A DNA stretch of 64,000 nucleotides from Octopus sinensis (taxonomy: Eukaryota). Location: the NCBI RefSeq assembly GCF_006345805.1, contig NC_043010.1:33294001-33358000 (forward strand), in the 5' to 3' direction. The translations under genes and the position numbers were made by a program. The first letter of the stretch is position 1, and each line of letters starts with the position of its first letter. Below, piece after piece: positions 8,471-63,966 of this stretch. The notes beneath the pieces were generated by a model. The model did not search any database, was not told the origin of the DNA, and worked only from the letters and a program-made list of their open reading frames with translations.

Positions 8471-8471
8471 A

Positions 8472-34444: not shown

Positions 34445-34545
34445 GACTGAATGTCAAGAACAGATAAATGGTTTCTATGGCGCCAAGTTTAAGAAGTTCA
34501 GTACAGAAGAGGAAGCTCTGGCTTTTGCAGAAATTCCGGCATCAG
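34445..34545 (+). CDS. RNASEH1: RNase H1-like exon: hybrid-binding domain C-half (TECQEQINGFYGAKFKKFSTEEEALAFAEIPAS)
   Basis: Matches the HBD pattern W.EC..Q...F..A.FKKF.T..EA..F. Acceptor ttttcag, donor gtgaat. Confidence 0.9.
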
Positions 34546-37500
34546 GTGAATAGAATTTTAGTGCTGTTTGGTATAATCAGTAGAGTGTTGAATGAATATC
34601 TTGTGGTATTTAGCTCAGTTTTTTACGTTCTGAGTTCAAATCCTAGTTAGGTCAATTAACTTTCATCCTTCTGGGGCTCAATAATGGTCCAGTACTGAGA
34701 TTGATATAGTCAGCTGTTCTCTCATTGTGACTTTGTGTCTGTATCAAAAAATAATTATTGTGCAGGTTTGGTTGTGTTGTGAAGAAGCTTGCTTTGCAAT
34801 CATATGATTTCAGGTTCAGTCCTACAATGCTTGCATTTTGGGCAAGTGTCTTATACTATAGTCCAGGCTGACCAATACCTTGTGAGTGAATTTGGTAAAC
34901 AGAACATGGACGATGCCAGCACCGCCTTGACTGGCTTCCATGCCGGTGGCACATAAAAAGCACCAATCCGATCGTGGCCGTTGCCAGCCTTGCCTGGCAC
35001 CTGTGCTGGTGGCACGTAAAAAGCACCCACTACACTCACGGAGTGGTTAGCATTAGGAAGGACATCCAGCTGTAGAAACATTGCCAGATCAGACTGGAGC
35101 CTGGTGCAGCCTTCTGGCTTCCCAGATCCCCGGTCGAACCGTCCAACCCATGCTAGCATGGAGAACGGATGTTAAACGATGATGATGATGATGGAACTGA
35201 AGCCCATCACACAATGTGTGTCTGTCTTGTGTTTGTGTGCCCACCCACCATTGCTTGACAACCAGAGTTAGTTTGTTTATGTGCCCATAACTTTGTAGTT
35301 TGACAAAAGAAACTGATGTAGTAAGAACCAGACTTTTAAAAGATTAGTACTGGCTCACTTTGTTCAACTAAATCGTTCAAGGCAGTGCATGGCTGCAATC
35401 CAAAAGCTGAAACAAATAAAGATGAAAGATTGCTGTCGTAGTAGGATTAGTAGTGTCAGACAAAATGCTGTGCAGGTTTTGTTCCATCTCTTTCTATTGT
35501 GAGTTTAAATCCCACTATGATAAACTTTGTCTTTTATTTGTTGAGGGCCAATAAAAACAAAGTTCCAGTTAAGTACTATATTGGGCCACCATTAGTCAAG
35601 GTTAACCACATATCTGCTCTCGTGTATGTTTGAACAAGATTTTTGAAGAAGACTAGCAGATACCTATTCCAGTCACCCCATCAACTTGATGCCCTTGTTA
35701 TTTGCAACCCTTAAGCAAGGTAATATTTTCCCTCATAGCCAGACATGTTTTTCACAGGAGATTAGAGATAAATAGCATTGTTTTAATGATGGAGATGTTC
35801 ATTTACAATCATCACATCACACACACACAAGGAACTTCTTTTAGTTTCCATCTTACAAATTCATTCATAAAGCTTTCTTTGGCCCAGGACTATAGCAGAA
35901 GATATTTGGTCTAGGTGCCACTGAACCTGAAACCATGTGGATGACTAACAAATTTCTTAAATACACACACACTCTCTCTGTCTCTCAGTGGATATATATT
36001 TAATAGTCATTTTCCCATTTTTGCTCTCCCAAGTAATTAGTGTTTTTTTTTGTTAATATTATGTAACTAATTTGCTATTTTATTTATATATTAACAGACA
36101 AAACTCTCTCCAGTGTAGCAAAATCTATTCAACCGATTGTGAAAAAACTCATGTCCGGAGTGAAAGAAGTCTCTCCTCTCTGTCAGACACTGGTGTCAAT
36201 GCTGACTGATTTGGATGACTCAGAAGAAAGCAAAGAATTTTCAATATTAGCATATAATGTTGAAAATGATTTGGCTAAGTTGACAACAAGTGTTAAACTG
36301 GCAATTGATTCTAAGCTTTTGACAGGAACTACTAAGAGGAAGGCTTCTGATTCATCTGAAGACGCATCAGAACCTCCTGAAAAGAAGAAGTGTGTTGAAG
36401 AAGAAGGAGGTTTTACTGGTAATGTATCATGTTTTCATTCTCCTTTTAAGAGATTGTTAATATTTTATTATTGTTTTTTGTTAATGAAAACTTGCAGCTT
36501 ATTTTGCTTGGTATGATAAAAAGTGTCAGCTTCTCCTAGCCAGCAGGCTAAAGTGACACTTGTTTACTGATCATGGTTCAAGAACTCTGTGGAGAACTCT
36601 TGCAGTTCCAAGCAATGCTGATTTTTACAGGTGTTCTATTTTTACATTTGTACCAATCTTCTTGAGCTGTATTGGTATTTGATAACTGCTGATTCTTCCA
36701 CCTGCACCAATCACTATTTGTATCATGTCCACTCTCTCCATTGCCCATAACCTGTGTATTTCCCACTTCAATTCATCATAGTTGTTCACTTTTTCTTTTT
36801 CTTTCTCTTCGATCCTGTTATCACCAGACATGCTTGTCAATTATCAGGCATATTTTATTTTATTTTCTGTTCACCACAACAATGTTAGGTTTCCATTGTC
36901 TAATCTGATGATCACACTGAATCATTGTATTTCACAGGGTTTTGCAATCTTCATTCGCAGTAATTCCCTCTGAAATTTGGTCATACCATGTCTGATCTTT
37001 CTAGGCCATAATTTCCACAAATCTCCAACGGATCATTCTTGCCTCATTGTCTTGTCGTCTTTGTATTTACAGTGTGCTGATTTTGGTTATTCACTAACAA
37101 TGCACACTGTTTCACATTTGGCATTTGTCACTCTTAGTTGTGTTATCAATTTTGCACTTTAAATAGTTTGTCCTCAATGCTTGTTCTTGTGCTGTGCATA
37201 TAAGTGCTTCTGTGTCTGTCTTGGAGCTCATATCTCTTGCAAACTGACTGTACTTTTTTTTGTGTTCTTTTCTTCTTTAGATTTCTCTTTCTTAACACAA
37301 TTATCAATTTTGATGATTTTGGACTTCTTCACATGTATCAGCAATGGTTCGGTGGCATTTTTTACATATCATCCTAAGCTGCTTTTCTCTGCTTCAACAC
37401 AATCCCAGCAACTGATCAAATCCTTCCCATCCTTTCTTCTGGACAAGTACAACCTATATGTATCACTCTTGGAATAAATTGCTCCATGCACTGTCAATAG

Positions 37501-40500
37501 TTTCCATGACTTCATAATCATACTCATCAGTCAATAGTTTCTGTGTCTTTGAATCCATACTCATCATCATCATCATCATTATTATTATTGCAATCCCTAC
37601 CAAGATCTACTTTGCCATTCACCTCTCCATGGTTAATAAAATAATGTACTTGTCAGTTACAAGGATTGATTTAATTGACTGATCTCTTCCTGCAAACTTC
37701 AGGTTTTGTGCCTATATTAGAAACAATTATTATTATTGGGGATTGGTAAAATCAGTAGAGCATCAAGAAAATTTCTCACAAGTGTTTGCTCTGGCTCTTT
37801 ATGTCCTGAGTTCAAATTCTGCCAATGCCAACTTTGTCTTTCATCCTTTCAGAGTTGACCTTGAACTCACCAATCAAGTAAGTTTAAGGTCAATGGTTTT
37901 GACTAACCTGCTCCCCTCAAAAATGTTGGCCTTGTACCAAAATTAAAATCATTGGTATAGTCTCTCACCAACACTTCTCAGCCTCTGGGTCACAAACATG
38001 CTATTCCCTCACTCTGCATTTTCTACCACTGATACTGTGGTTTCTGCTCTTTGGAGCTGGCTGGTCTCAAGCTAACTTCTCTCATCTCTATCTTACTCTC
38101 CTCTGCCATATTCTGTCTAACTACTATGCCCAAGCCTACTTCACCAGGACATCAGTCTTTTGAAATCTACTTGCTACTCTTCTTTTCCTGGAGTTGTATA
38201 TAAACATAAACCACATTGATCTCATTGGTTTTGGAAGATTTGTCAGATATTCGTAGAGCCCTTCCTCACAGTAAAATTGATAAAAAAGAAACAGCTTAAC
38301 AATTACATTCACTCATTTGTCTCACCCAAATATTCTCCCTAGAGATTACACTCTCCATAATTTCTAGCCAGTTCATAGATGATTTATATAAAGAGCCAGG
38401 CAACAATATATTTTTTATAATTTCTATAAAGAGCCAAGCTGCAATATATTTTTATATATAATTTATGCAAATTTTTCTTTACAGAGAAAAAATTGGCTCA
38501 TGATTATGGAGTTGTTTTCATTTATGGCAGCTGTCTCAACAATGGTAAACCTGATGCCTCAGCTGGATTTGGTGTCTACTGGGGAGACAGAGAAATGTAA
38601 GTTTTTTGTTGTTGTTTTGTTTCTTGTTAGCGCTTGACTAATTAGTCACATAACAACATGGGATGGATGGGGATAGAGCTAGAAATATAGAATGTGGTCC
38701 CCCATTTCTATTTATTCTTTGGGAACAGAAGGATTATTGTGCCTTTATAGATTTGAATTGTTTCAATATATCGCTTAGTAATGTTTCTATAAGCCATAAC
38801 CTATCTGTCTTTTGTATATTTAGGACTACTTTATATAGTTTATCTTTTATGTAAAACAGTAAGGCTGTGATATGATGGGAAGAAACTTAGCAGATTTTCC
38901 TAGGAGATTGAGTGGGCAGAAACAGCAAGGATGAGGGGGAATAATTTCTTTGGCATCAAGGAGGAATTGCAAGTGAAAAAGCATCTGTTGGGGTACATCT
39001 GTGTTGAGGAAAATAAGGAGTCTCCGATTTTACAAATTTATAGTTATGTCACATTAAATTACTCTTTTGGACTTAAGGGTTGAACTTAGTTTTATATGGG
39101 TTTTTTTAGGTTACATCAGTGGCTGGTTTCAAATTTCACCCTCATGTAATGTGTGGTCCATCCATCACATATAGATTCCTTTGTTTGCTCAGTTGAAGAT
39201 TTTGTCAGTGTCAAGAACAACATTGCCTGGACTGAGTTGCAGTATGGTGGTCATATTAAGATAATGGCACCTAATTTACTCCTTTAATTCATGTATATCT
39301 TTGTCATAATAAATATCCCTCACCCCTCATACTCTCCATCACAAATTAACTGGTAAGTCTTCACTTTATGTATTAAAGTTTGTTAAAATGTTGGTTTGTA
39401 TATTGATAGGTGTTTCAGGGTGTGAACATTGTATATACTCTTTTTGTGTATGAATGTGTGTATATAGTGTGTGTAAATGTGTATATTTGTATGTCTGTAA
39501 ATGTGTATCAATCGTATCATTTTTGTGAAACCTGTCTTCCAGTTCGCTTCACTCACCCCTCTCTGCATGTATATTTGTATAAACACAGATTGGGGGGGGG
39601 CTAGTAGTTAGTGTTGAACTTGTGAATGTGAGATCATTTCCTGGACTGGGCTGCTTGTTGTGTTCTTGAGTAAAACATTTTGTCTCACGTTGCTCTGCAA
39701 TCACTTTGACATCTGATGTATGACACATCATCCATCTGTACAAACAGTGTCAATTTCATGGAGGGAGTGACCTAATGTGCAGTACAAACTTTTGATCTCT
39801 ATAAACATCATCTGTGCAGGTGTTTCATTGAGAGTCCATGTATGTACAGACACACATATATTTCTCAGCACTATTTTTAACACAAAAATATGAATCGCTA
39901 TTCTGTTCACATATCTCTTTCTTTCCCCCTCTCTCTCTCTGTTTGTCTTTCTCTGTATAATGACATGTGTATACACATTCACACAGGTATCATCATCATC
40001 ATCATCATCGTTTAACGTCCGCTTTCCGCGCTATCACGGGTTGGACGGTTTGACCGGGTCTGGGAAGCCAGGGGCCGCACCAGGCTCCAGTCTGAATCTG
40101 GCAGAGTTTCTATGGCTGGATGCCCTTCCTAACGCCAACCACTCCGTGATTGGATTGGGTGCTTTTTACGTGCCACCTGCACAGGGGCCGGAGGGTCCGG
40201 CATCGTCACGATCGGTTCGAGCATTTTAACGTGTCAGCGGCACGGGGGCAACGAGGTCCGGGTACTTTGGGGATCGGGTACTTTGGGGATCCAGGGTACT
40301 TTGGGGATCCGGGGTACATAGAATGGGTAGGGGGTATGTGGAATTGCTGCAGAAAGCAGCCGGGTCTTTGTAGTCACAGCATTTATCGTCACTGAGTAAC
40401 GTAATTAGGTAGAGGAAAGAAATACAGATATTCTAGAGTTGAGTTGGGGAGGGGGGGTCCAGTTGAGGCGGGTAATATAGGAGAGCAACCAGTGGGGAAG

Positions 40501-43500
40501 GTTGGGGTAAGGAGGAACGATGGCAGGAAGGGTTGGTGTAGGTTCCTAAGAAATAAAGACATTCGTTATCGTCACTGAGTAACGTTATTAGGTAGAGGAA
40601 AGAAATACAGATATTCTAGAGTTGAGTTGGGGAGGGGGGGTCCAGTTGAGGCGGGTAATATAGGGGAGCAACCAGTGGGGAAGGTTGGGGTAAGGAGGAA
40701 CGATGGCAGGAAGGGTTGGTGTAGGTTCCTAAGAAATAAAAACGTAGGATATTACGAGGCGGGAGGGTGCTAAAGGGGATGGTCGGAATGAGGCAGTGTC
40801 AGGAGGAAGCGTAAGATCGGTGGGCAGTTGATGAGCTATGGCGCTAGCAGCTTGTCTTTTCACAGTGAAAGCATATGAGGAGAAGGGGTAGTGGTGGGAA
40901 AATGAGGGAGTAGGGCGTACCCGGTGTAGATGAGTAAGGCGTATCCGGTGTAGATGGTGAGAACAGGGTATACTGGTATTGGTGGTGGGGGGTGAGAACA
41001 GTGTTCACCGGTATTGGTGGTGGTGGCGGTGAGAACAGTGTTCACCGGCATTGGTGGTGGGGGTGAGAACAGTGTTCATCGGTATTGGTGGTGGGGTGGG
41101 GGGGGCGGGCAAACCGCCAATGGCTGAAAGATGGGAAGAGATGGGATTACGGCTTGAGGTAGCCTAAGGTTAAATTTTGTAGAGAGAGAGATAGGAAAGA
41201 TAAATCAAGTTATGGCGAAGGCTTGAAAGTAGCCTAAAAGGTTAAATTTTCGTAACAATGTATGAAAAACGTAGTAACAACGAATAAAAATAGTAAGATA
41301 AATTTTTAAGAACTTGCTGCGGACATCGATCGGGAGTTGAAATTGAAGAAGAAAGTAAGTTGAATGGGAATTTAAATTGTAGAATCGTAATGGTAATGGC
41401 GATTTTCAAGTTTTAGCATAAGAAGAAGAAGAGGAGGAAAAAGACCGCCAATGGCTGAAAGATGGAAGAGATGGGATTACGGCTTGAGGTAGCCTAAGGT
41501 TAAATTTTGTAGAGAGAGAGATAGGAAAGATAAATCAATTTTGGCGAAGGCTTGAAAGTAGCCTAAAAGGTTAAATTTTCGTAACAATGTATGAATAAAC
41601 GTAGTAACAACGAATAAAAATAGTAAGATAAATTTTTAAGAACTTGCTGCGGACATCGATCGGGAGTTGAAATTGAAGAAAAAAGTAAGTTGAATTGGAA
41701 TTTAAATTGTAGAATCGTAATGGTAATGGCGATTTTCAAGTTTTAGCATAAGAAGAAGAAGAGGAGGAAAAAGACCGCCAATGGCTGAAAGATGGGAAGA
41801 GATGGGATTACGGCTTGAGGTAGCCTAAGGTTAAATTTTGTAGAGAGAGAGATAGGAAAGATAAATCAAGTTATGGCGAAGACTTGAAAGTAGCCTAAAG
41901 GTTAAATTTTCGTAACATGTATGAATAAACGTAGTAACAACGAATAAAAATAGTAAGATAAATTTTTAAGAACTTGCTTGCGGACATCGAACGGAGTTGA
42001 AATTGAAGAAGAAAGTAAGTTGAATTGGGAATTTAAATTGTAGAATCGTAATGGTAATGGCGATTTTCAAGTTTTAGCATAAGAAAGAAGAGAGGAAGAA
42101 GACCGCCAATGCTGAAGATGGGAAGAGATGGGATTACGGCTTGAGGTAGCCTAAGGTTAAATTTGTAGAGAGAGAGATAGGAAAGATAAATCAAGTTATG
42201 GCGAAGGCTTGAAAGTAGCCTAAAGTTAAATTTTCGTAACAATGTATGAATAAACGTAGTAACAACGAATAAAAATAGTAAGATAAATTTTTAAGAACTT
42301 GCTTGCGGACATCGATCGGGAGTGTAAATTGAAGAAGAAAGTAAGTTGAATTGGGAATTTAAATTGTAGAATCGTAATGGTAATGGCGATTTTCAAGTTT
42401 TAGCATAGAGAAGAAGAGGAGGAAAAAGACCGCCAATGGCTGAAAGATGGGAAGAGATGGGATTACGGCTTGAGGTAGCCTAAGGTTAATTTTGTAGAGA
42501 GAGAGATAGGAAATAATCAAGTTATGGCGAAGGCTTGAAGTAGCCAAAGGTTAAATTTTCGTAACAATGTATGAATAAACGAGTAACAACGAATAAAAAT
42601 AGTAAGATAAATTTTTAAGAACTTGCTTGCGGACATCGATCGGGAGTTGAAATTGAAGAAGAAAGTAAGATGAATTGGTAATTTAAATTGTAGAATCGTA
42701 ATGGTAATGGCGATTTTCAAGTTTTAGCATAAGAGAAGAAGAGAGGAAAAAAGACCGCCAATGGCTGAAAGATGGAAGAGATGGGATTACGGCTTGAGGT
42801 AGCCTAAGGTAAATTTTTGTAGAGAGAGATAGGAAAGATAAATCAAGTTATGGCGAAGGCTTGAAAGTAGCCTAAAAGGTTAAATTTTCGTAACAATGTA
42901 TGAATAAACGTAGTAACAACGAATAAAAATAGTAAGATAAATTTTATAAGAACTTGCTGCGACATCGATCGGGAGTTGAAATTGAAGAAGAAAGTAAGTT
43001 GAATGGGAATTTAAATTGTAGAATCGTAATGGTAATGGCGATTTTCAAGTTTTAGCATAAGAAGAAGAGAGGAAAAAAAACCGCCAATGGCTGAAAGATG
43101 GGAAGAGATGGATTACGGCTTGAGGTAGCTAAGGTTAAATTTGTAGAGAGAGAGATAGGAAAGATAAATCAAGTTATGGGGAAGGCTTGAAAGTAGCCTA
43201 AAAGGTTACTTTTCCGTAACAATGTATGAATAAACGTAGTAACAACGAATAAAAATATAAGATAAATTATTAAGAACTTGCTGCGGACATCGATCGGGAG
43301 TTGAAATTGAAGAAGAAAGTAAGTTGAATTGGGAATTTAAATTGTAGAATCGTAATGGTAATGGCGATTTTCAAGTTTTAGCATAAGAAGAAGAAGAGGA
43401 GGAAAAAGACCGCCAATGGCTGAAAGATGGGAAGAGATGGGATTACGGCTTGAGGTAGCCTAAGGTTAAATTTTGTAGAGAGAGAGATAGGAAAGATAAA

Positions 43501-46500
43501 TCAAGTTATGGCGAAGGCTTGAAGTAGCCTAAGGTTAAATTTTCGAAACAATGTATGAATAAACGTAGTAACAACGAATAAAAATAGTAAGATGAATTTT
43601 TAAGAACTTGCTGCGGACATCGATCGGGAGTTGAAATTGAAGAAGAAGGTAAGTTGAATTGGGAATTTAAATTGTAGAATCGTAATGGTAATGGCGATTT
43701 TCAAGTTTTAGCATAAGAAGAAGAAGAGGAGGAAAAGACCGCCAATGGCTGAAAGATGGGAAGAGATGGGATTACGGCTTGAGGTAGCCTAAGGTTAAAT
43801 TTTGTATAGAGAGAGATAGGAAAGATAAATCAAGTTATGGCGAAGGCTTGAAAGTAGCCTAAAAGGTTAAATTTTCGTAACAATGTATGAATAAACGTAG
43901 TAACAACGAATAAAATAGTAAGATAAATTTTTAAGAACTTGCTTGCGGACATCGATCGGGAGTTGAATTGAAGAAGAAAGTAAGTTGAATTGGGAATTTA
44001 AATTGTAGAATCGTAATGGTAATGGCGATTTTCAAGTTTTAGCATAAGAAGAAGAAGAGGAGGAAAAAGACCGCCAATGGCTGAAAGATGGGAAGAGATG
44101 GGATTACGGCTTGAGGTAGCCTAAGGAAATTTTGTAGAGAGAGAGATAGGAAAGATAAATCAAGTTATGGCGAAGGCTTGAAAGTAGCCTAAAAGGTTAA
44201 ATTTTCGTAACAATGTATGAATAAACGTAGTAACAACGAATAAAAATAGTAAGATAATTTTTAAGAACTTGCTGCGGACATCGATCGGGAGTTGAATTGA
44301 AGAAGAAAGTAAGTTGAATTGGGAATTTAAATTGTAGAATCGTAATGGTAATGGCGATTTTCAAGTTTTAGCATAAGAAGAAGAAGAGGAGGAAAAAGAC
44401 CGCCAATGGCTGAAAGATGGGAAGAGATGCGATTACGGCTTGAGGTAGCCTAAGGTTAAATTTTGTAAGAGAGAGATAGGAAAGATAAATCAGTTATGGC
44501 GAAGGCTTGAAAGTAGCCTAAAGGTTAAATTTTCGTAACATGTATGAATAAACGTAGTAACAACGAATAAAAATAGTAAGATAAATTTTTAAGAACTTGC
44601 TGCGGACACGATCGGGAGTTGAAATTGAAGAAGAAAGTAAGTTGAATTGGGAATTTAAATTGTAGAATCGTAATGGTAATGGCGATTTTCAAGTTTTAGC
44701 ATAAGAAGAAGAAGAGAGGAAAAAGACCGCCAATGGCTGAAAGATGGGAAGAGATGGGATTACTGCTTGAGGTAGCCTAGGTTAAATTTTGTAGAGAGAG
44801 AGATAGGAAAGATAAATCAAGTTATGGCGAAGGCTTGAAAGTAGCCTAAAGGTTAAATTTTCGTAACAATGTATGAATAAACGTAGTAACACGAATAAAA
44901 TAGTATAAATTTTTAAACTTGCTGCGGACATCGATCGGGAGTTGAAATTGAAGAAGAAAGTAAGTTGAATGGGAATTTAAATTGTAGAATCGTAATGGTA
45001 ATGGCGATTTTCAAGTTTTAGCATAAGAAGAAAGAGGAGGAAAAAGACCGCCAATGGCTGAAAGATGGGAGAGATGGGATTACGGCTTGAGGTAGCCTAG
45101 GTTAAATTTTGTAGAGAGAGAGATAGAAAGATAAATCAAGTTATGGCGAAGGCTTGAAAGTAGCCTAAAAGGTTAAATTTTCGTAACATGTATGAATAAA
45201 CGTAGTAACAACGAATAAAATATAGATAAATTTTTAAGAACTTGCTGCGGACATCGATCGGGAGTTGAAATTGAAGAAGAAAGTAAGTTGAATTGGGAAT
45301 TTAAATTGTAGAATCGTAATGGTAATGGCGATTTTCAAGTTTTAGCATAAGAAGAAGAAGAGGAGAAAAAGACCGCCAATGGCTGAAGATGGGAAGAATG
45401 GGATTACGGCTTGAGGTAGCCTAAGGTTAAATTTTGTAGAGAGAGAGATAGAAAGATAAATCAAGTTATGGCGAAGGCTTGAAGTAGCCTAAAAGTTAAA
45501 TTTTCGTAACAATGTATGAATAAACGTAGTAACACGAATAAAAATAGTAAGATAAATTTTTAAGAACTTGCTGCGGACATCGATCGGGAGTTGAAATTGA
45601 AGAAGAAAGTAAGTTGAATTGGGAATTTAAATTGTAGAATCGTAATGGTAATGGCGATTTTCAAGTTTTAGCATAAGAGAAGAAGAGGAGGAAAAGACCG
45701 CCAATGGCTGAAAGATGGGAAGAGTTGGATTACGGCTTGAGGTAGCCTAAGTTAAATTTTGTAGAGAGAGAGATAGGAAAGATAATCAGTTATGGCGAAG
45801 GCTTGAAAGTAGCCTAAAAGGTTAATTTTCGTAACAATGTATGAATAAACGTAGTAACAACGAATAAAATAGTAAGATAAATTTTTAAGAACTTGCTGCG
45901 GACATCGATCGGGAGTTGAAATTGAAGAAGAAGGTAAGTTGAATTGGGAATTTAAATTGTAGAATCGTAATGGTAATGGCGATTTTCAAGTTTTAGCATA
46001 AGAAGAAGAAGGGAGGAAAAAGACCGCCAATGGCTGAAAGATGGGAAGAGATGGGATTACGGCTTGAGGTAGCCTAAGGTTAAATTTGTAGAGAGAGAGA
46101 TAGGAAAGATAATCAAGTTATGGCGAAGGCTTGAAAGTAGCCTAAAAGTTAATTTTCGTAACAATGTATGAATAAACGTAGTAACAACGAATAAAATAGT
46201 AAGATAAATTTTTAAGAACTTGCTTGCGACACATCGATCGGGAGTTGAAATTGAAGAAGAAAGTAAGATGAATTGGGAATTTAAGTTGTAGAATCGTAAT
46301 GGTAATGGCGATTTTCAAGTTTTAGCATAAGAAGAAGAAGAGGAGGAAAAAGACCGCCAATGGCTGAAAGATGGAAGAGATGGGATTACGGCTTGAGGTA
46401 GCCTAAGGTTAATTTTTTGTAGAGAGAGAGATAGGAAAGATAAATCAAGTTATGGCGAAGGCTTGAAAGTAGCCTAAAAGGTTAAATTTTCGTACAATGT

Positions 46501-52500: not shown

Positions 52501-55500
52501 TAATGGCGATTTTCAAGTTTTAGCATAAGAAGAAGAAGAGAGGAAAAAGACCGCCAATGGCTGAAAGATGGAAGAGATGGGATTACGGCTTGAGGTAGCC
52601 TAAGGTTAAATTTTGTAGAGAGAGATAGGAAAGATAAATCAAGTTATGGCGAAGGCTTGAAAGTAGCCTAAAAGGTTAAATTTTCGTAACAATGTATGAA
52701 TAAACGTAGTAACAACGAATAAAAATAGTAAGATAAATTTTTAAGAACTTGCTGCGGACATCGATCGGGAGTTGAAATTGAAGAAGAAAGTAAGTTGAAT
52801 TGGGAATTTAAATTGTAGAATCGTAATGGTAATGGCGATTTTCAAGTTTTAGCATAAGAAGAAGAAGAGGAGGAAAAAGACCGCCAATGGCTGAAAGATG
52901 GGAAGAGTTTGGATTACGGCTTGAGGTAGCCTAAGGTTAAATTTTGTAGAGAGAGATAGGAAAGATAAATCAAGTTATGGCGAAGGCTTGAAAGTAGCCT
53001 AAAGGTTAAATTTTCGTAACAATGTATGAATAAACGTAGTAACAACGAATAAAAATAGTAAGATGAATTTTAAGAACTTGCTGCGGACATCGATCGGGAG
53101 TTGAAATTGAAGAAAAGTAAGTTGAATTGGAATTTAAATTGTAGAATCGTAATGGTAATGGCGATTTTCAAGTTTTAGCATAAGAAGAAGAGGAAAAAGA
53201 CCGCCAATGGCTGAAAGATGGGAAGAGTTTGGATTACGGCTTGAGGTAGCCTAAGGTTAATTTTGTAGAGAGAGAGATAGGAAAGATAAATCAAGTTATG
53301 GCGAAGGCTTGAAAGTAGCCTAAAGGTTAAATTTTCGTAACAATGTATGAATAAACGTAGTAACAACGAATAAAATAGTAAGATAAATTTTTAAGAACTT
53401 GCTGCGGACATCGATCGGGAGTTGAAATTGAAGAAGAATAAGTTAATTGGGAATTTAAATTGTAGAATCGTAATGGTAATGGCGATTTTTAAGTTTTAGC
53501 ATAAGAAGAAGAAGAGGAGGAAAAAGACCGCCAATGGCTGAAAGATGGGAAGAGATGGGATTACGGCTTGAGGTAGCCTAAGGTTAATTTTGTAGAGAGA
53601 GATAGGAAAGATAAATCAAGTTATGGCGAAGGCTTGAAAGTAGCCTAAAGGTTAAATTTTCGTACAATGTATGAATACGTAGTAACAACGAATAAAAATA
53701 GTAAGATAAATTTTTAAGAACTTGCTTGCGGACATCGATCGGGAGTTGAAATTGAAGAAGAAAGTAAGTTGAATTGGGAATTTAAATTGTAGAATCGTAA
53801 TGGTAATGGCGATTTTCAAGTTTTAGCATAAGAAGAAGAAGAGGAGGAAAAAGACCGCCAATGGCTGAAAGATGGGAAGAGATGGGATTACGGCTTGAGG
53901 TAGCCTAAGGTTAAATTTTGTAGAGAGAGCGATAGGAAAGATAAATCAAGTTATGGCGAAGGCTTGAAAGTAGCCTAAAAGGTTAAATTTTCGTAACAAT
54001 GTATGAATAAACGTAGTAACAACGAATAAAAATAGTAAGATAAATTTTTAAGAACTTGCTTGCGGACATCGATCGGGAGTTGAAATTTAAAAAGAAAGTA
54101 AGTTGAATTGGGAATTTAAATTGTAGAATCGTAATGGTAATGGCGATTTTCAAGTTTTAGCATAAGAAGAAGAAGAGGAGGAAAAAGACCGCAATGGCTG
54201 AAAGATGGAGAAAGATGGGAAGAGATGGGATTACGGCTTGAGGTAGCCTAAGGTTAAATTTTGTAGAGAGAGAGATAGGAAAGATAAATCAAGTTATGGC
54301 GAAGGCTTGAAAGTAGCCTAAAAGGTTAAATTTTCGTAACAATGTATGAATAAACGTAGTAACAACGAATAAAAATAGTAAGATAAATTTTTAAGAACTT
54401 GCTGCGGACATCGATCGGGAGTTGAATTGGAAGAAGAAAGTAAGTTGAATGATTGGGAATTAAATTGTAGAATCGTAATGGTAACGGCGATTTTCAAGTT
54501 TTAGCATAAGAAGAAGAAGAGGAGGAAAAGACCCCCAATGGCTGAAGATGGGAAGAGATGGGATTACGGCTTGATGTAGCCTAAGGTTAAATTTTGTAGA
54601 GAGAGAGATAGGAAAGATAAATCAAGTTATGGCGAAGGCTTGAAAGTAGCCTAAAAGGTTAAATTTTCGTAACAATGTATGAATAAACGTAGTAACAACG
54701 AATAAAAATAGTAAGATAAATTTTTAAGATCTTGCTGCGGACATCGATCGGGAGTTGAAATTGAAGAAGAAAGTAAGTTGAATTGGGAATTTAAATTGTA
54801 GAATCGTAATGGTAATGGCGATTTTCAAGTTTTAGCATAAGAAGAAGAAGAGGAGAAAAAGACCGCCAATGGCTGAAAGATGGGAAGAGTTTGGATTACG
54901 GCTTGAGGTAGCCTAGGTTAAATTTTGTAGAGAGAGAGATAGGAAAGATAAATCAAGTTATGGCGAAGGCTTGAAAGTAGCCTAAAAGGTTAAATTTTCG
55001 TAACAATGTATGAATAAACGTAGTAACAACGAATAAAAATAGTAAGATAAATTTTTAAGAACTTGCTGCGGACATCGATCGGGAGTTGAAATTGAAGAAG
55101 AAAGTAAGTTGAATTGGGAATTTAAATTGTAGAATCGTAATGGTAATGGCGATTTTCAAGTTTTAGCATAAGAAGAAGAATAGGAGGAAAAAGACCGCCA
55201 ATGGCTGAAAGATGGGAAGAGATGGGATTACGGCTTGAGGTAGCCTAAGGTTAAATTTTGTAGAGAGAGAGATAGGAAAGATAAATCAAGTTATGGCGAA
55301 GGCTTGAAAGTAGCCTAAAAGGTTAAATTTTCGTAACAATGTATGAATAAACGTAGTAACAACGAATAAAAATAGTACGATAAATTTTTAAGAACTTGCT
55401 GCGGACATCGATCGGGAGTTGAAATTGAAGAAGAAAGTAAGTTGAATTGGGAATTTAAATTGTAGAATCGTAATGGTAATGGCGATTTTCAAGTTTTAGC

Positions 55501-58500
55501 ATAAGAAGAAGAAGAGGAGGAAAAAGACCGCCAATGGCTGAAAGATGGGAAGAGTTTGGATTACGGCTTGAGGTAGCCTAAGGTTAAATTTTGTAGAGAG
55601 AGAGATAGGAAAGATAAATCAAGTTATGGCGAAGGCTTGAAAGTAGCCTAAAAGGTTAAATTTTCGTAACAATGTATGAATAAACGTAGTAACAACGAAT
55701 AAAAATAGTAAGATAAATTTTTAAGAACTTGCTGCGGACATCGATCGGGAGTTGAAATTGAAGAAGAAAGTAAGTTGAATTGGGAATTTAAATTGTAGAA
55801 TCGTAATGGTAATGGCGATTTTCAAGTTTTAGCATAAGAAGAAGAAGAGGAGGAAAAAGACCGCCAATGGCTGAAAGATGGGAAGAGATGGGATTACGGC
55901 TTGAGGTACCCTAAGGTTAAATTTTGTAGAGAGAGAGATAGGAAAGATAAATCAAGTTATGGCGAAGGCTTGAAAGTAGCCTAAAAGGTTAAATTTTCGT
56001 AACAATGTATGAATAAACGTAGTAACAACGAATAAAAATAGTAAGATAAATTTTTAAGAACTTGCTTGCGGACATCGATCGGGAGTTGAAATTGAAGAAG
56101 AAAGTAAGTTGAATTGGGAATTTAAATTGTAGAATCGTAATGGTAATGGCGATTTTCAAGTTTTAGCATAAGAAGAAGAAGAGGAGGAAAAAGACCGCCA
56201 ATGGCTGAAAGATGGGAAGAGATGGGATTACGGCTTGATGTAGCCTAAGGTTAAATTTTGTAGAGAGAGAGATAGGAAAGATAAATCAAGTTATGGCGAA
56301 GGCTTGAAAGTAGCCTAAAAGGTTAAATTTTCGTAACAATGTATGAATAAACGTAGTAACAACGAATAAAAATAGTAAGATAAATTTTTAAGATCTTGCT
56401 GCGGACATCGATCGGGAGTTGAAATTGAAGAAGAAAGTAAGTTGAATTGGAATTTAATTGTAGAATCGTAATGGTAATGGCGATTTTCAAGTTTTAGCAT
56501 AAGAAGAAGAAGAGGAGGAAAAAGACCGCCAATGGCTGAAAGATGGAAGAGATGGGATTACGGCTTGAGGTAGCCTAAGGTTAAATTTTGTAGAGAGAGA
56601 GATAGGAAAGATAAATCAAGTTATGGCGAAGGCTTGAAAGTAGCCTAAAAGGTTAAATTTTCGTAACAATGTATGAATAAACGTAGTAACAACGAATAAA
56701 AATAGTAAGATAAATTTTTAAGAACTTGCTGCGGACATCGATCGGGAGTTGAAATTGAAGAAGAAAGTAAGTTGAATTGGGAATTTAAATTGTAGAATCG
56801 TAATGGTAATGGCGATTTTTAAGTTTTAGCATAAGAAGAAGAAGAGGAGGAAAAAGACCGCCAATGGCTGAAAGATGGGAAGAGATGGGATTACGGCTTG
56901 AGGTAGCCTAAGGTTAAATTTTGTAGAGAGAGAGATAGGAAAGATAAATCAAGTTATGGCGAAGGCTTGAAAGTAGCCTAAAAGGTTAAATTTTCGTAAC
57001 AATGTATGAATAAACGTAGTAACAACGAATAAAAATAGTAAGATAAATTTTTAAGAACTTGCTGCGGACATCGATCGGGAGTTGAAATTGAAGGAGAAAG
57101 TAAGTTGAATTGGGAATTTAAATTGTAGAATCGTAATGGTAATGGCGATTTTCAAGTTTTAGCATAAGAAGAAGAAGAGGAGGAAAAAGACCGCCAATGG
57201 CTGAAAGATGGGAAGAGATGGGATTACGGCTTGAGGTAGCCTAAGGTTAAATTTTGTAGAGAGAGAGATAGGAAAGATAAATCAAGTTATGGCGAAGGCT
57301 TGAAAGTAGCCTAAAAGGTTAAATTTTCGTAACAATGTATGAATAAACGTAGTAACAACGAATAAAAATAGTAAGATAAATTTTTAAGAACTTGCTGCGG
57401 ACATCGATCGGGAGTTGAAATTGAAGAAGAAAGTAAGTTGAATTGGGAATTTAAATTGTAGAATCGTAATGGTAATGGCGATTTTCAAGTTTTAGCATAA
57501 GAAGAAGAAGAGGAGGAAAAAGACCGCCAATGGCTGAAAGATGGGAAGAGATGGATTACGGCTTGAGGTAGCCTAAGGTTAAATTTTGTAGAGAGAGAGA
57601 TAGGAAAGATAAATCAAGTTATGGCGAAGGCTTGAAAGTAGCCTAAAAGGTTAAATTTTCGTAACAATGTATGAATAAACGTAGTAACAACGAATAAAAA
57701 TAGTAAGATAAATTTTTAAGAACTTGCTGCGGACATCGATCGGAGTTGAAATTGAAGAAGAAAGTAAGTTGAATTGGGAATTTAAATTGTAGAATCGTAA
57801 TGGTAATGGCGATTTTCAAGTTTTAGCATAAGAAGAAGAAGAGGAGGAAAAAGACCACCAATGGCTGAAAGATGGGAAGAGATGGGATTACGGCTTGAGG
57901 TAGCCTAAGGTTAAATTTTGTAGAGAGAGAGATAGGAAAGATAAATCAAGTTATGGCGAATGTATGTATGTATGAATATGACACAATATTATCTATCTGT
58001 CTGTATACATATGTATGTTTATACAGAAACTCATTTATCAACAAAATCATTAAAGATATTTAGTCAATTGGAGATATGACTATAGAAAGCATGAAATGTT
58101 TTATTTTCGAAAGCATTAGCTTCATTTAACTAAATGTTTCTAACAATCACATAGAGAAATTTGTGTTTATCTGTGTACATACATTCACACATACTGAGAG
58201 ACAGCTAGATAATGAATACAGTTATATTCATAAGAATGTGTATGTGTGTAGTGTATCATTGTATAGGGAATGAAAGACTTGACAGACTGAAAGAATGGAG
58301 ATTCTTATTTTTTTACTTTGAAGGTGCACGATGGTGTATAGTGTGTGTGTGTGTGTATGATGATATATGTCGGATTGTGTGTATGTCTGTAGGTGAGTAT
58401 ATATGATGGTGTATGTTGCTTTGTGTATGTATATGATTGTATTTGAAGATGTATATTGGTTCATTGCTTCATATGATAAAAAGCAGTGTAATTTTTATTA

Positions 58501-61500
58501 GTCAGCAGAATTACTAAGTCTAGCATGCTCTGTTTTTACAGGAACACCAGTGAAAGACTTGGTGGCCGACAAACAAACATTCAGGCTGAAATAAATGTAA
58601 GCCATTCTATTTAAGTTTTCAAGTGAAAGTAATGAGAGAATTATTTGTTGGGAAGCTCCGCATTAATTGACACCTTGTGTGTGGTTTTGGGTGACTTCAT
58701 CTGAAGGCACAAAAACTCTTCCCCTTCTTGCTATTGTAACTTCAACCTTTATATTTAAGCATCTAGAGATGTTTTTTTTTTTTTGTTTAGTCTTTATCTA
58801 AAATGAAATTATTTTGTTTGCAGGCTGCCATTAGAGCTGTTGAACAAGCAAAGGCCAAAAATATTTCAAACCTTACTATCAACACTAGTAGTGAGTTCAT
58901 AATGAACAGTAAGTTATGTTTGTTTCTCCTATGAATCAACTAATCCTTAACCTATTTAGTGTTTGTGGATGTTATTCCCTAACTTCTTTCATTTGGAACC
59001 CAAGTATTTTACTTCCATCAGTGAATGTCCAGAGGATCTCTTAGTGTTGTGTGTGACTGCATCCTATTGCAAAATTATTATATGTTAAGGTTGAAGCAGA
59101 AAATTGTGCATATTATTTTAGCACCAGATCGATGCTGATTGAACAAAGCAGACTATCCTGTTTTGTTTTGTTTTTTTATTTCTTAAATGTATCTAGAACT
59201 ACATTTATCCAATGTGTCTATCCATTTTTAAGATGGTAGGGAATGATTTGAGGGAGATCAGATTGCTATTTCTAGCATGTTAAGTAATTATAGAGCCTCC
59301 CTCATTGGCCTGGGGATTAGGTATTTCCAGAATACCTCTTTTACAATATTCACCTTTAGCAGCAGGGCTTTTTACATGTAGTCTTCCAGGAACAAATTGG
59401 CAGATGTTTATATGTTTATTGGTCAGCTTCATTGTAGCAAATAGCAGCTGGAGCTACACTTATCTTTGCTCTTCACAGAATATTTGTACAAGTAAATCTG
59501 TTACAGGTAATATTTATGTGGAATACTTTTGTTTTTATTTTTCAGTTTGTTTATCTACTTCTCATTCATCATAATATTGTTATTTCTGTTTGTATAGCTG
59601 TGCATGGGGAGACTCATTGAACCAAGTGACACCATAGTCATGACCTTTGCTAGTGTCATGTAAATGGCACCTGTGAAATCGTAGTCATGGCTGTTACTGG
59701 TGTCATGTAAAAGGTGCCCATGCCAGTGGCACATAAAAAAGCACCCATTACACTTTCGGAGTGGTTGGTATTAGAAAGGGCATCCACCTGTAAAAACCAT
59801 GCCAAATCAGACTGGAATCTGGTGCAGCTCTCCAGCTTACCACTTCCAGTCAAACCGTCTAACCCATGCCAGCATGGTAAACAGACATTAAATGATGATG
59901 ATAATGATGATAGCCACACCCACATCTCTCATGTCACAGGTGTTATTTTATTAACCATACATATCTTGGAACTATTGGGTCATGCCATAAATAATGTGGT
60001 TTTTTGTACTTCTTTCATTTTTCAAAATTAAGATAAACAAAATTCTTTTCCAGTCTAAAATATACTCTCCTTCATTTTCTACAATGCTCTTCCATATATC
60101 TGGTACACTTGCCCCTCTTCCAAAATTCACTTGTCTGTGACGAAAAATACTCCTCCAGTACAGTTCTGACCTCATCTGCAAAATTCCTATTTTTTAGCCC
60201 AAATAATTTTGAAGACTGCAGAATAAATGATAATCAGATGGGGCAATGTCCGGTGAATATGGTTTCCCATTCAAACTGCTCCAGCCTTTGGAATGTCATC
60301 CTTGCTATATGTGGCTGAGCATTATTCTGATGGAAGAACACCTTTCGTCTTGAAACCAAAAATAGTTGTTTTTCTTTTAGTGCTGACTTAAGTTGCTCAA
60401 GCTGCTCGCAGTAGATCTCCTTTGTTATTGTTTGGTTTGGGTTTAAAAGTTCAATGTGGACTAAACCTTTCATATCCCACCATACAGATAACAACACATT
60501 ATGTGGTGCCAGTGTTTCTCCTTTTCCTACCCAATGTCTTCAGTGCTTGACATGTTTATAGAGAACCCATTTCTTGTCACCAGTCACTACTTGGTCCAAA
60601 AAAGTTCATTTGTGAGATGTAACAGCAAAGAAGAACACCCATTCACTCTCTGCGCGCAATTAGACTCAGGACGTTTGTGGGGGACCCATTGACCTAATTT
60701 GCTGACTTTTCTAATGGCACACAGGTGTTGATGAATGGTTGAATGACCAAATCCAAGTTTCTCTGCTAGTTCCTCAACAGTTACAATGGGATTTTGTTCC
60801 ACCAGGGTTTGCAGGATGTCCTTGTTGGGCTCTACAGATCTTCCAGAATGAGGCTCGTCTTCTAGGCTGTAGTTTCTGGCTCGGAATTTCTGGAACCACT
60901 GTTGATACTGGCTTATGCTTATTTCTGAACCCCATATACTGCATTAATATACCTTGCAATTTCTGTTGCTTTGTTGCCTTTATTGAACTTATAAAGCATA
61001 ATATACCGAATATGCTCCTTTGTCATTTCCATAACAGCTTTGACAAAATAACTGTTAAAATTGCACTGTACTCTTCAAAACTTGCACTAAGAATAAGCAC
61101 AAGGTAAAATTAGAAACAAAGTGAGGGTTGACAATAGGAAATACATCTGGCTGTAGAAAATCTGCCTTAACTATTTCAGTCTGATCCATGCAAGTATGGA
61201 AAAATGGATGTTAAATTATGATGATGGTGGTTTCTCTGGTGTTTGCTGTCATTATTGACTTCCATGATAATTACTTTGTGTATTTGTGTATCTTAATCAT
61301 GAGAGAAGTGGGGCCTTAACCTGAGCGTCAACACTTCAGAGCTTGCAATAAATTTAAATTAAAAGGAACCAAGAGATTAACACAAATACTTGCAACAGAA
61401 TAAGTTAGAGGCCATTAGTGACCAGAGGGTAGTGTTACGCTGGGTGGGATTTTAAATGTAACACCAAAAAGTTAGGCCTAAGACAATAATGTTAAATCTG

Positions 61501-61725
61501 TTCCTTCTCTCCCTCACACCAGGTATAACTAAATGGTTGGAGGGTTGGAAAAAGAAGAACTGGATGAAATCAAGTGGAGAAGAAGTGACAAACAAAGAAG
61601 AACTGCAGGAATTGGATAAGAAATTGGAGGGAATCAATGTTAAATGGGTAAGTTTAAGCAGGACGAACTGGGAAGCTAAAAGAAAACTCTATCATGACAT
61701 CTAAACCAACTGAAGGATTTTATTC

Positions 61726-61762
<37 letters not shown>

Positions 61763-63966
61763 AAACATGTTTGATTGTGTGCTTTGTTTTTTTTTTCCAT
61801 TGTGGTCTAATTAGAAGAGGTTAAGATTACTTATCAAGGTTTGCAAAGATTTTGGTAAGAGATTAGAAAATCTGACTGTAATTTTGGAGGAGAAAAATTT
61901 TTCAGTCTGTGTGCTTTTTACCTTTCCTACTGATCATCTTGATGATATAGTAGAAGTTGATGATGGTATGAGGGGTTTCTTCCATATGTTGCAGACTGTT
62001 AGGTTTGGTTGTGTGAGCAGTGTGGAAGGACATATCTAGGAGAATGGTTTCAGTCCCACATTTAACTGTCTGATGAGTCAGAGGTGAAACATATGTTGTG
62101 AAGAGTCATCAGTGTAGAACTGGTAGTGTCAACCAGTGAGTTGAGGTACCAGAGAACTGGCAAGGGTTGTTGTGCTTTGATTAGCTGTAAGTTGGAGCAT
62201 TCTGTGAGGTGCAACTCTAAAAATGTTGTTGTTTTAACCCTAGATCAACCCTAATTGAACAGACTTATGATCAAAGGTATTCTAGCCAAGGCCATGCATC
62301 TTTTCTGAAGTATGTCCTATTCCAAGACAGCAGGGTGTGATTTAAGAGAAATTTGGCTTTTTCTAGCAAGTTGTTACTACTTAGATGCTCTCTCCTCCCT
62401 TTTCTCTGATAATGAAGTAAAAGCTTTGAGGTGAGAAATAGATCAATAATTTTTTAATATTTAATTTTATGGATTTGGGCAGGTGACAACACAAATTAGT
62501 GCAAAATTTAGGGATGGAAAACTGCTCATCCTCAACAGTAGCTGCATTGGTGTAGGAGGAGTGAGAGAGGAAAGAAATGTGATGAGAATAAGTACAAAGA
62601 AAGGTGAGGCAAGATGTCATCAGTGTAAAATAATTGGTAGTTGAACTACTGTTGATGTTGGAGAGGTTTGAAGAAAAGTAGTGGTTATAAAGAAACTTAG
62701 CAGGGAGACTTAGAGCCACAGTAACTGGAAGTCTTTTTGCTTCCACTCTCTCCTCTTCTCATCTGGTTATCAACCAAATAATACTTTTCAGTGTGTGAAG
62801 GTGGAATATAGAATGTAGTCTGAACAACAGATGAACTGGAAATAGATGAGAAATAGCTGGCACAGAAAAGAATAAAATTTGAATGAGGGAGGAGAAAAGC
62901 AAGTATGCATATGTACACCCCTGCCACACACATCCTTAACTCTCTTAAGTTTGTTTCAACTACTGAATGAACTAGCACAAAGAATTACAAGGTTCCAGAT
63001 GAACTAGTCTCATTGACAGATTGTCAAAGAACTCTAGAAGAATTAAATGTCATTTTAATCTCTCATCAAAAATTTGAGTAGATGCCTAGAAAATTTTTCA
63101 TGTCTAAAAATGTTAGTAATAACTTTCTATTATTCAAAGAAACAAGAAACTTTTCTTTAATAACCAATGAAAATAGTCATAAACAGTTGTTATTATATAT
63201 TGCCTAGCACTTAGAAGAAAGGGGTTTTAAAGAAAATAGTGTATTTGAATGGTTGTTTTTAATTTAAAAAAACACTATTTTATGAATGAATCAATGCTTA
63301 AAATTTTAGACATGAATTTGAAACAGAAAAGGCAAGATACCTACTTAACTCTTTTGAGAGAAATATTAGTATAATTTGTAACTTGATTAACCAAGGAATG
63401 GTCAGTACTTAATAACAAACCAGTGGGACTGGTTTATTGTAATTAGAATTATTATTAAAAGAAAGAAAAGTGTTGGCCTTGTGCGAAAATTAGAAAGAAT
63501 TATCAATATGAATTGTGTTCATGGCCCATGTAGGCCCTCTAAGAGTGGTTAAGTTGGCTGCTTCAAGTTGATTGCTACAGAAAGAACTAGGGCAGGAAGG
63601 GAATTCCAATGGGATGTTATTCAGGGAAGGGAGGGACTTGGAAATGATTATTGTAGGCCTGGGAATACAATATGCATGTTTCAAATTGGTACTAATAATG
63701 TTTAGAGATTTTTAAAATTATTATTTTATTTAATTTTATAGTTTAATGAGAGTTTCTCTAATTTCTATTCTCAGTCTCTGCATAGGAGAATAAAAATAGA
63801 TAGGCTGTGGATAGCCTCCTCCTCTTTACATTAACAAATAAATATAAAAATTATTTTGATTGTATATTATTTCTATTTCCTAGGTCCATGTGGATAAATG
63901 TTGTGCTGGAATCGAAGCTGCTGAACAATTGGCCAAAAAGGAGGAGAACTTCCTCTACCTGAGTAG
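34445..63966 (+). CDS. RNASEH1: RNase H1-like gene span (7 identified exons, first exon not found, predicted catalytically inactive)
   Basis: Exons 34445-34545, 36098-36418, 38485-38596, 58542-58596, 58824-58908, 61523-61647 and 63884-63966 have AG/GT boundaries and compatible phases. They encode an HBD, a linker and an RNase H domain. Confidence 0.9.
34905..35195 (+). mobile_element. RTE 3'-UTR fragment (intronic)
   Basis: RTE tail motif and (GAT)n. Confidence 0.75.
36098..36418 (+). CDS. RNASEH1: RNase H1-like exon: ~107-aa linker with a bipartite NLS (KRKAS...PPEKKK)
   Basis: Open frame, acceptor ttaacag, donor gtaatg. Phase 1 at both ends matches the neighbouring exons. Confidence 0.75.
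36560..37500 (-). mobile_element. Decayed R4/Dong-type non-LTR retrotransposon 3' end (zinc knuckle plus restriction-like endonuclease)
   Basis: Minus-strand remnants PEGITANEDCK...IQCDHQI...KPNIVVVN and EKVNNYDELKWEIHRLWAMERVDMIQIVIGAGG...SALLGTARVLHRVL*. Confidence 0.7.
38485..38596 (+). CDS. RNASEH1: RNase H1-like exon: start of the RNase H domain (KKLAHDYGVVFIYGSCLNNGKPDASAGFGVYWGDRE)
   Basis: Aligns to human VVVYTDGCCSSNG...RAGIGVYWG. Acceptor tttacag, donor gtaagt. Confidence 0.9.
39988..40240 (-). mobile_element. RTE 3'-UTR fragment
   Basis: (CAT)n followed by the GCTGGATGCCCTTCCTAACGCCAACC motif. Confidence 0.75.
40240..41100. repeat. G-rich minisatellite cluster (~17-bp x3, ~183-bp x2, ~35-bp x4)
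   Basis: GGGTACTTTGGGGATC repeats, the 40383-40740 duplication, and GGTGAGAACAGTGTTCACCGGTATT repeats. Confidence 0.85.
41110..57960 (+). repeat. Satellite array, 333-bp monomer, about 51 copies
   Basis: The anchor CCGCCAATGG recurs at 55528, 55861 and 56195 (333-334 bp spacing). The array is continuous from 41110 to 57960. Confidence 0.98.
58542..58596 (+). CDS. RNASEH1: RNase H1-like exon (55 nt; NTSERLGGRQTNIQAEIN)
   Basis: Aligns to human NVGIRLPGRQTNQRAEIH. Canonical splice sites. Confidence 0.92.
58824..58908 (+). CDS. RNASEH1: RNase H1-like exon (85 nt; AAIRAVEQAKAKNISNLTINTSSEFIMN)
   Basis: Aligns to human [28 protein letters not shown]. Canonical splice sites. Confidence 0.92.
59590..59912 (+). 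mobile_element. RTE 3'-UTR fragment (intronic)
   Basis: RTE tail motif and degenerate (GAT)n. Confidence 0.7.
59975..61100 (-). pseudogene. Mariner transposase pseudogene (intronic)
   Basis: ORF 60587-60802 has the HTH and KLGQWVPH. ORF 60234-60497 has LSVWWDMKG...YCEQL...FHQNNAQPH. One TIR-like end lies at ~59975. Confidence 0.85.
61523..61647 (+). CDS. RNASEH1: RNase H1-like exon (125 nt; SITKWLEGWKKKNWMKSSGEEVTNKEELQELDKKLEGINVKW)
   Basis: Aligns to human [28 protein letters not shown]...DIQW. Canonical splice sites. Confidence 0.95.
63884..63966 (+). CDS. RNASEH1: RNase H1-like last coding exon (VHVDKCCAGIEAAEQLAK...)
   Basis: Acceptor tttcctag. Aligns to human [22 protein letters not shown]. 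The end coordinate assumes a missing A in the A5 run at 63935-63939. Confidence 0.75.

Follow-up and report, generated by a model that had tools for sequence, protein, structure and literature searches.

A fast-evolving tandem family of RNase H1 genes with dismantled active sites at the ancestral RNASEH1 locus of octopuses

The RNase H1 of animals is commonly seen as a housekeeping enzyme that is strongly conserved and encoded by a single-copy gene. In this study we describe an RNase H1-like gene of Octopus sinensis whose product, as judged from its sequence, is a paralogue of RNase H1 with a dismantled active site and not the canonical enzyme. The gene lies in a stretch of 64,000 nt (positions 33,294,001 to 33,358,000 of NC_043010.1, GCF_006345805.1; chromosome CM016872.1 of GCA_006345805.1), which is referred to as the window, and it belongs to a tandem family of such genes. 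In the canonical enzyme a hybrid-binding domain (HBD), a linker and the RNase H domain follow one another. Contacts with the heteroduplex were located by mutagenesis at N151, R179, N182/Q183, F213, W221/W225 and T232/S233 of the human protein (PMC6846478). W221 stacks on deoxyribose, and the choice of the DNA strand falls to a phosphate-binding pocket (PMC8960830). Compared with the canonical proteins of human and O. bimaculoides (XP_014778914, here P0012), the window copy shares the fold, the domain order, the exon structure, the RPS7 locus and the residues of the basic protrusion and phosphate pocket, and it is 80% identical to the O. bimaculoides enzyme. It differs from them in having Y145, S210, a short loop without His and E274, and in the loss of the start of the longer, presumably mitochondrial isoform. 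Its family further differs in being multi-copy and in a ratio of non-synonymous to synonymous substitution rates (dN/dS, omega) of ~7 as against ~0.04.

The octopus protein most plausibly works in the manner of the engineered dead RNase H1 mutants (D210N and others) that are used as R-loop probes or traps. D210N binds the hybrid without cutting it, as in the D210N-hybrid complexes 2qk9, 2qkb and 2qkk of the PDB, which were matched by Foldseek, and purified inactive RNase H1 serves as a hybrid probe (ref. 33 as cited in PMC8960830). Like these mutants, the window copy has lost an active-site carboxylate and is predicted to have retained binding. However, the mutants are laboratory point mutants, whereas the octopus protein is encoded by a natural gene and about 70 of 151 domain positions are altered or variable across its copies. 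Expansion of RNase H1 by gene duplication has been described for RNH1A/B/C of Arabidopsis (bioRxiv 10.1101/662080). Those paralogues are all active and specialised by compartment (nucleus, mitochondrion, plastid), while the octopus copies appear to lose activity and to diversify. In slicer-dead Argonautes an RNase H-like fold keeps nucleic-acid binding after loss of the catalytic carboxylates; this is another family in which the loss is ancient and conserved, whereas in octopus it is recent, tandem and diversifying. Exons accelerated beyond introns, omega well above 1 and recent tandem amplification are also displayed by snake-venom phospholipase A2 genes and conotoxins. These are secreted toxins, while the octopus protein is an intracellular nucleic-acid-binding fold without a signal peptide. 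A literature search found no paper dealing with the RNase H1 of octopuses or with inactive RNase H1 paralogues that occur in nature.

The window was searched by tblastn with a human RNase H1 query that served as a probe only. One collinear set of exons was detected on the plus strand, and no second RNase H1 exon set came to light in the window when the proteins of human, O. bimaculoides and copy A were used as tblastn queries (copy A is the upstream member of the array described below). All seven exons, E2 to E8, have an AG acceptor and every internal exon has a GT donor, so that 13 of 13 splice sites are intact, and their phases are compatible. The in-frame joining of seven exons with canonical splice sites, proposed in a preliminary description of this DNA, was thus recovered from the DNA, and the protein obtained on splicing does not differ from the annotated P0001 and P0125. 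That description had limited the gene to these seven exons and ended it at 63966. In fact the gene has eight exons, the first of them located ~13 kb upstream of where the window starts, and the TAG at 63964-63966 is out of frame.

Correspondence with human residues was established from HMMER matches to human structures, Pfam domains and a MAFFT alignment of 180, mostly metazoan, RNase H1 homologues. The best solved relative of the spliced protein was human RNase H1 (6vrd, E = 2.7e-43), and the Pfam domain PF00075 (RNase_H) was matched with E = 1.5e-22 and 80.7 bits against a cut-off of 25.8. An AlphaFold2 model of the window protein had a predicted local distance difference test score (pLDDT) above 90 across the RNase H domain, and Foldseek aligned it to human RNase H1-hybrid complexes with a template modelling score (TM-score) of 0.9 and a root-mean-square deviation of 1.2 A.

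At the four carboxylate positions of the enzyme (D145, E186, D210 and D274), the window copy has Y-E-S-E according to both HMMER and MAFFT. Exon E4 (38485..38596), which encodes the first strand of the RNase H domain, carries Tyr for D145 (FIYG, TAT at 38523-38525) together with T144I, C147S and H150N. Exon E5 (58542..58596; NTSERLGGRQTNIQAEIN) keeps E186 (QAEI, GAA at 58588-58590) as well as R179, T181 and N182, and exon E6 (58824..58908; AAIRAVEQAKAKNISNLTINTSSEFIMN) carries Ser for D210 (NTSS, AGT at 58887-58889). The E4-E5 junction, GACAGAGAAAT joined to GAACACCAGTG, is paralogue-specific. In exon E8 (63884..64000, continuing 12 nt beyond the window) the flexible loop PGHSGF with H264 is replaced by DKC-C (VHVDKCCAG), which is two residues shorter and has Cys in place of His, and D274 is replaced by Glu (GAA at 63923-63925). 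The catalytic replacements, with E186 as the only residue kept, were therefore found at the codons where they had been reported. The Ser codon at D210 had been placed two changes from an Asp codon; the ancestral codon is GAC, as in O. bimaculoides, from which AGT is three changes away. Because D145 is Tyr, D210 is Ser, the loop His is lost and D274 is Glu, the window copy is predicted to be incapable of two-metal hydrolysis, and cleavage to be absent.

The substrate-binding surfaces are present, as had been described. Exon E7 (61523..61647) encodes the basic protrusion, ITKWLEGWKKKNWMKSSGEEVTNKEE..., and keeps W221, W225, S233 and N240, which with R179 and T181 of E5 make up the protrusion and the phosphate pocket. 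The motifs GRQTN, KWLEGW, KSSG, VTNKE and FKKF are all found. Exon E2 (34445..34545), located by tblastn with P0001, P0012 and P0017, encodes the second half of the HBD, (W)TECQEQINGFYGAKFKKFSTEEEALAFAEIPAS, with the F-K-K motif intact. It matches PF01693 with E = 5.5e-10 (39.8 bits against a cut-off of 21), and W43, F58, K59 and K60 are present. Exon E3 (36098..36418; 99% identical to P0001 by tblastn) encodes a cephalopod-specific linker, which in the AlphaFold2 prediction forms a long helical hairpin (P0001 residues 36-110; helices 36-72 and 77-110, pLDDT 84-89). This linker aligns with those of Argonauta, Sepia and a squid-like transcript; the vertebrate linker differs and is disordered.

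The residues at D145, E186, D210, H264 and D274 were D-E-D-H-D in 163 of the 180 homologues, and only the octopus proteins described here lacked D-E-D at the first three of these positions. In the same order, the window copy (P0001, P0125) has Y-E-S-C-E, P0124 has Y-V-N-C-E, P0005 has A-V-N-C-E, and P0002, P0004 and P0177-P0179 have A-V-S-C-D. In Octopus vulgaris, copy B has A-E-S-H-D and copy C has A-E-S-C-N. All copies other than copy A have therefore lost both D145 and D210, although the replacements differ (Tyr or Ala at D145, Ser or Asn at D210), and position 186 is Glu or Val among them. Orthologues with the same substitutions, which the preliminary description had suggested looking for, were found in part: Ser at D210 is shared by copies B and C of O. 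vulgaris, but D145 is Ala there. Common to all inactive copies are Y143F, T144I, C147S, H150N/K, C217S (human numbering, the first letter being the canonical cephalopod residue) and the two-residue deletion in the loop. N151, G152, W221, W225, S233 and N240 are invariant in all paralogues and position 179 is Arg or Lys; the invariant contact residues persist despite 8-18% amino-acid divergence among the copies.

Degenerate RNase H1 domains were also observed in a few proteins from other organisms, in an HMMER scan of 1.84 billion representatives followed by a survey of the residues in 330 domains from 313 proteins. In P0180, P0015 and P0182, two or three RNase H1 domains stand in tandem, and some of these domains have lost catalytic residues. 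Two of the three domains of P0180 are degenerate (VESHR, HEDHE), and P0015 combines an active with a degenerate domain (SDDES). Loss of the active site after duplication of RNase H1 may thus recur outside octopus as a rare and undescribed event.

The locus was compared among cephalopods. In Argonauta hians the gene order is PEX13, RPS7 (minus strand), RNASEH1 (plus), COMMD (minus), with one canonical RNASEH1, and in O. bimaculoides one canonical RNASEH1 adjoins RPS7. In O. sinensis the RPS7-COMMD interval measures 134 kb and contains two copies, of which the window copy is the distal one, next to the COMM-domain gene; it is a duplicate and not the RPS7-proximal copy. The upstream copy A displays FTDG, RAEIY and KTDS, so that D-E-D is intact. 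A separate copy of the active type, which had been sought, is thus present immediately upstream at the same locus. Further O. sinensis copies are located on two unplaced contigs, L006 (P0005) and L008 (P0124). The duplication unit of L008 takes in the downstream flank, and L008 may be an allele of the window copy. The O. vulgaris interval is ~215 kb long and holds at least three copies, A, B (L004) and C (L005). Copy C is collinear with the window, and the introns of the two are 97-98.7% identical. The comparison indicates that the array, which is flanked by RPS7 and COMMD, was formed at the ancestral RPS7-RNASEH1-COMMD locus within the Octopus vulgaris/sinensis lineage. In O. bimaculoides, which is single-copy, a partial E4 duplicate (VVFTDGCCFHNGKHGASAGLGVF) was observed ~190 bp downstream of the true E4 (L003 37206-37274).

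A fully canonical RNase H1 protein is not annotated in either O. sinensis or O. vulgaris, and the only models of these species with D-E-D, or with D-E alone, take their 3' exons from an inactive copy further downstream. P0126 and P0017, both NCBI models, start in copy A and use E7 and E8 of the window, E7 doubling as their 3' exon, while in O. vulgaris the model P0016 continues from copy A into the last three exons of copy B. All three are probably chimeric; for P0126 and P0017 this is argued because a separate gene call of 99 aa (46593-48985) sits in the copy-A region where E7-E8 are expected (46659-49109 in O. bimaculoides). Judging from this gene call at the expected coordinates, copy A probably has its own E7 and E8.

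Selection was analyzed on E2-E8 of five paralogue DNAs (window, L008, L006, L004, L005) together with O. bimaculoides. Pairwise omega in E4-E8 ranged from 2 to 10 or more with the NG86, LWL85, YN00 and maximum likelihood methods. The window and copy B differ in E4-E8 by two synonymous and 35 non-synonymous changes, and copies B and C by none and 34. When each substitution among the five paralogue DNAs was counted a single time, the numbers were 3 synonymous and 82 non-synonymous in E4-E8 (omega ~7, binomial p = 7e-6), and 7 synonymous and 25 non-synonymous in E2-E3. None of the 117 substitutions counted in this way created a stop codon (P = 0.002 under neutrality), and exon indels were in frame except for a 1-nt deletion in the window copy and the deletion of the E3 acceptor in copy C. 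In the canonical lineage (O. bimaculoides versus Argonauta) omega in the RNase H domain was 0.03-0.05. A low synonymous rate as the source of the high omega was rejected, since dS (~0.02) matches intron divergence (~0.013-0.035) and dN (0.10-0.19) exceeds both.

The same pattern was obtained when exons were compared with their introns. The RNase H exons were variable at 16.7% of sites and their 250-nt intron flanks at 3.4%, which is a ~5-fold difference, and for all exons and flanking introns the values were 12.6% and 5.3% (Fisher p = 3e-12). In E4 the window departs from the other paralogues at 11-17 of 112 nt, compared with 0-5 nt in the 400-nt flanks of this exon. Indels produced non-homologous flank alignments upstream of E2 and E3 in copy C and downstream of E6 in the O. 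vulgaris copies; these inflate intron divergence, and the contrast between exons and introns is therefore conservative. The mutation spectrum was mixed (77 transitions, 70 transversions), and a single editing- or deaminase-like mutational process was rejected on this ground as the cause of the exon hyper-divergence. Positive selection is focused on the substrate face of the domain, at positions 143-155, 179-188, 206-217, 223-239 and 259-282. These results suggest that the combined exon/intron and omega pattern is beyond neutral decay but within reach of positive diversifying selection acting on the RNase H domain.

Exon types are distributed as a mosaic across copies and species. E2 of the window is identical to E2 of both L006 and L008; E4, E7 and E8 are also identical to those of L008, while the compared exon flanks differ by 1.6%. 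Copies B and C of O. vulgaris have an E6 that is 100% identical to that of the window, and an E5 that is set apart from it by one synonymous change. The sharing of exons in this manner indicates gene conversion or unequal exchange, with each exon type conserved once formed. Taken together with the array, this is more than the preliminary description had claimed: the gene belongs to a tandem family of dead RNase H1 genes that evolves fast and occupies the ancestral locus.

A pseudoenzyme combines homology to an active enzyme and loss of catalytic residues with maintenance by selection. The former two are found here, and maintenance by selection is found at the family level. The preliminary description had argued that the gene is selected and not decaying. 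For the family this holds, omega being ~7 in E4-E8, and not near 1, with no stop codons. It is not settled by the window copy alone, which has almost no private substitutions (one synonymous, in E5) and a terminal frameshift.

Several observations weigh against a selected and binding-competent product. Exon 1 encodes MSDYPVKKGREPGVHETW, where the canonical counterpart is MPFYAVKKGRVPGVYETW, and 5 of the 18 HBD residues that it contributes are changed non-conservatively. It is embedded in seven tandem repeat units of 1.94 kb upstream of the window (L007 4096-15851, window position 1 being L007 position 22955), several of which are frameshifted or have a Trp-to-Arg change at the donor. The HBD and linker evolve with omega ~1. 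Near the 3' end, an A-run of E8 has five A residues in the window copy (63935-63939, GGCCAAAAAGG) and six A or AATAAA in five of five relatives. Because of this 1-nt deletion the ancestral TAG at 63964-63966 is out of frame, the ancestral C-terminal reading ...KKGGELPLPE-TAG is lost, the open reading frame stops 10-12 nt past the window end, and the last 8 residues are exchanged for 23 unrelated ones. L006 and L008 have the same E8 but with six A and the TAG in frame, and the difference may be a homopolymer error of the long-read assembly. O. vulgaris copy C, the positional orthologue, has lost the F-K-K motif besides its E3 acceptor. The copies are gene-conversion mosaics, so that orthology and the assignment of changes to branches are uncertain. 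Among the contact positions, the Q183-equivalent, F213 and T181/N182 vary between copies, which may mean a shift in substrate preference. The public transcript assemblies searched yielded no RNase H1 transcripts of octopus. The same searches returned RNase H1 transcripts of squid and cuttlefish only, all of them canonical. The only hint of expression is the annotation of isoforms that have an internal E3 splice variant.

The upstream ATG, from which a longer N-terminal extension would start, is AAG in all seven exon-1 units of O. sinensis, while O. bimaculoides and copy B of O. vulgaris retain it. This extension is assumed to be a mitochondrial targeting peptide by analogy with mammals. The window-copy protein is therefore probably not mitochondrial.

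Four other explanations were considered. In one of them the window copy, and perhaps all inactive copies, would be non-functional tandem duplicates, with catalytic changes that reflect decay and annotated proteins that are prediction artefacts. The C-terminal frameshift, the lost upstream ATG and frameshifted exon-1 units, the deleted acceptor and decayed HBD motif of copy C, the relaxed HBD and linker, the 17-kb satellite in intron 4 and the missing octopus transcripts all fit this explanation. It predicts omega near 1 and equal divergence of exons and introns, whereas omega was ~7 and the RNase H exons were five times as variable as their flanks. The absence of stops in 117 events, the 13 intact splice sites, the invariant binding and core residues, and the identity of four exons between the window and L008 in spite of diverged flanks also speak against it, and we regard it as unlikely, though not to be dismissed. 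Another explanation accepts selection but holds that the protein was neo-functionalised for a different target and is now a binder of double-stranded or structured RNA, or a protein-interaction module, instead of a hybrid binder. Positive selection concentrated on the substrate face fits this explanation, as do the differing contact positions between copies, and the HBD looks relaxed or dispensable, with the gene models P0005, P0006 and P0124 starting after it. However, the DNA-strand readers W221, W225 and S233 in the channel and N240 in the phosphate pocket are invariant in all copies, and such a change of target seems improbable to us.

It could also be that there is one compound gene, in which copy-A exons are spliced to E7 and E8 of the window to give a working enzyme while E2-E6 of the window serve as alternative cassettes. 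P0126 and P0017 have this structure, P0016 a similar one in O. vulgaris, and neither species has a fully canonical RNase H1 annotated. Such a splice would have to skip at least 75 kb and six competent acceptors. Moreover, the models of the two species join at different exons, as is typical of chimeric predictions in tandem duplicates, and the 99-aa call indicates that copy A probably has 3' exons of its own. We therefore consider a compound gene quite improbable. Finally, the O. sinensis assembly is an early long-read one, and the difference of five versus six A in E8 is an error type of such assemblies. An origin of the catalytic substitutions in sequencing or assembly error is nevertheless effectively refuted, since the derived E5 and E6 recur in the independent O. 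vulgaris assembly and in other O. sinensis contigs, in agreement with the preliminary description.

The explanation towards which we lean, with a little more confidence than doubt, is that of a selected, diversifying family of RNase H1 pseudo-nucleases that dock on hybrids without cutting them, with the window copy as its distal member. Strong positive diversifying selection has reshaped the RNase H domain, above all around the active site and on the face that meets the nucleic acid, while the fold core and the DNA-strand contacts have been held fixed. The protein would then still dock on RNA:DNA hybrids, or on a closely related duplex, without cleavage, and may act by occupancy, by masking or marking the hybrids or by competing with active RNase H1. 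Genetic conflict usually leaves amplification, exon mosaicism and an omega well above 1 as its signature. Since all of these are seen here, the most likely setting would be a conflict with hybrid intermediates of retroelements or viruses, or with an inhibitor that targets RNase H1; the conflict scenario is drawn from the evolutionary pattern only, which counts against it. The family as a whole shows birth-and-death turnover. The window copy may itself be partly degraded, and the degenerative marks argue for such turnover and possibly for the loss of this copy.

A satellite array of ~51 units of 330/333 bp was detected by Tandem Repeats Finder at 41113..57960, with units 95-96% identical. It fills intron 4, which accounts for the intron length of 20 kb. 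Copy C of O. vulgaris has the same array in its intron 4, but neither the remaining copies nor O. bimaculoides has it. An open reading frame of 448 aa with reverse-transcriptase motifs is located at 9960-11306 on the minus strand, within intron 1 of the RNase H1-like gene, and is apparently the remnant of a non-LTR (long terminal repeat) retrotransposon. A direct duplication of ~1.7 kb occupies 207-3021, and each of its copies has a GC-rich minisatellite with units of 62-67 bp. GC-rich minisatellites are located at 439-680, 2146-2387 and 9178-9396, and long TA microsatellites at 4069-4248 and 7991-8472.

If our reading is correct, the octopus proteins would be the first equivalent in nature of the inactive RNase H1 that has been engineered to trap R-loops, and the question is raised of what effect non-cleaving hybrid binders have in a cell alongside the active enzyme. 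The family also provides a clean case of exons outpacing introns outside toxin and immune gene families. Cephalopod genomes are rich in retroelements, and the amplification and diversification of the family may point to a genetic conflict over RNA:DNA hybrids that is relevant to retroelement control in cephalopods. We propose tentatively, and as a possibility that may well prove wrong, that the tandem dead RNase H1 genes of the vulgaris-group octopuses, with a binding face under diversifying selection that resembles an arms race, form a natural 'dRNH1' system, a hybrid-directed defence or regulatory module. It would bind hybrids, such as the reverse-transcription or R-loop intermediates of viruses or retroelements, and leave them uncut. 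Such a module would be of a kind previously undescribed in animals.

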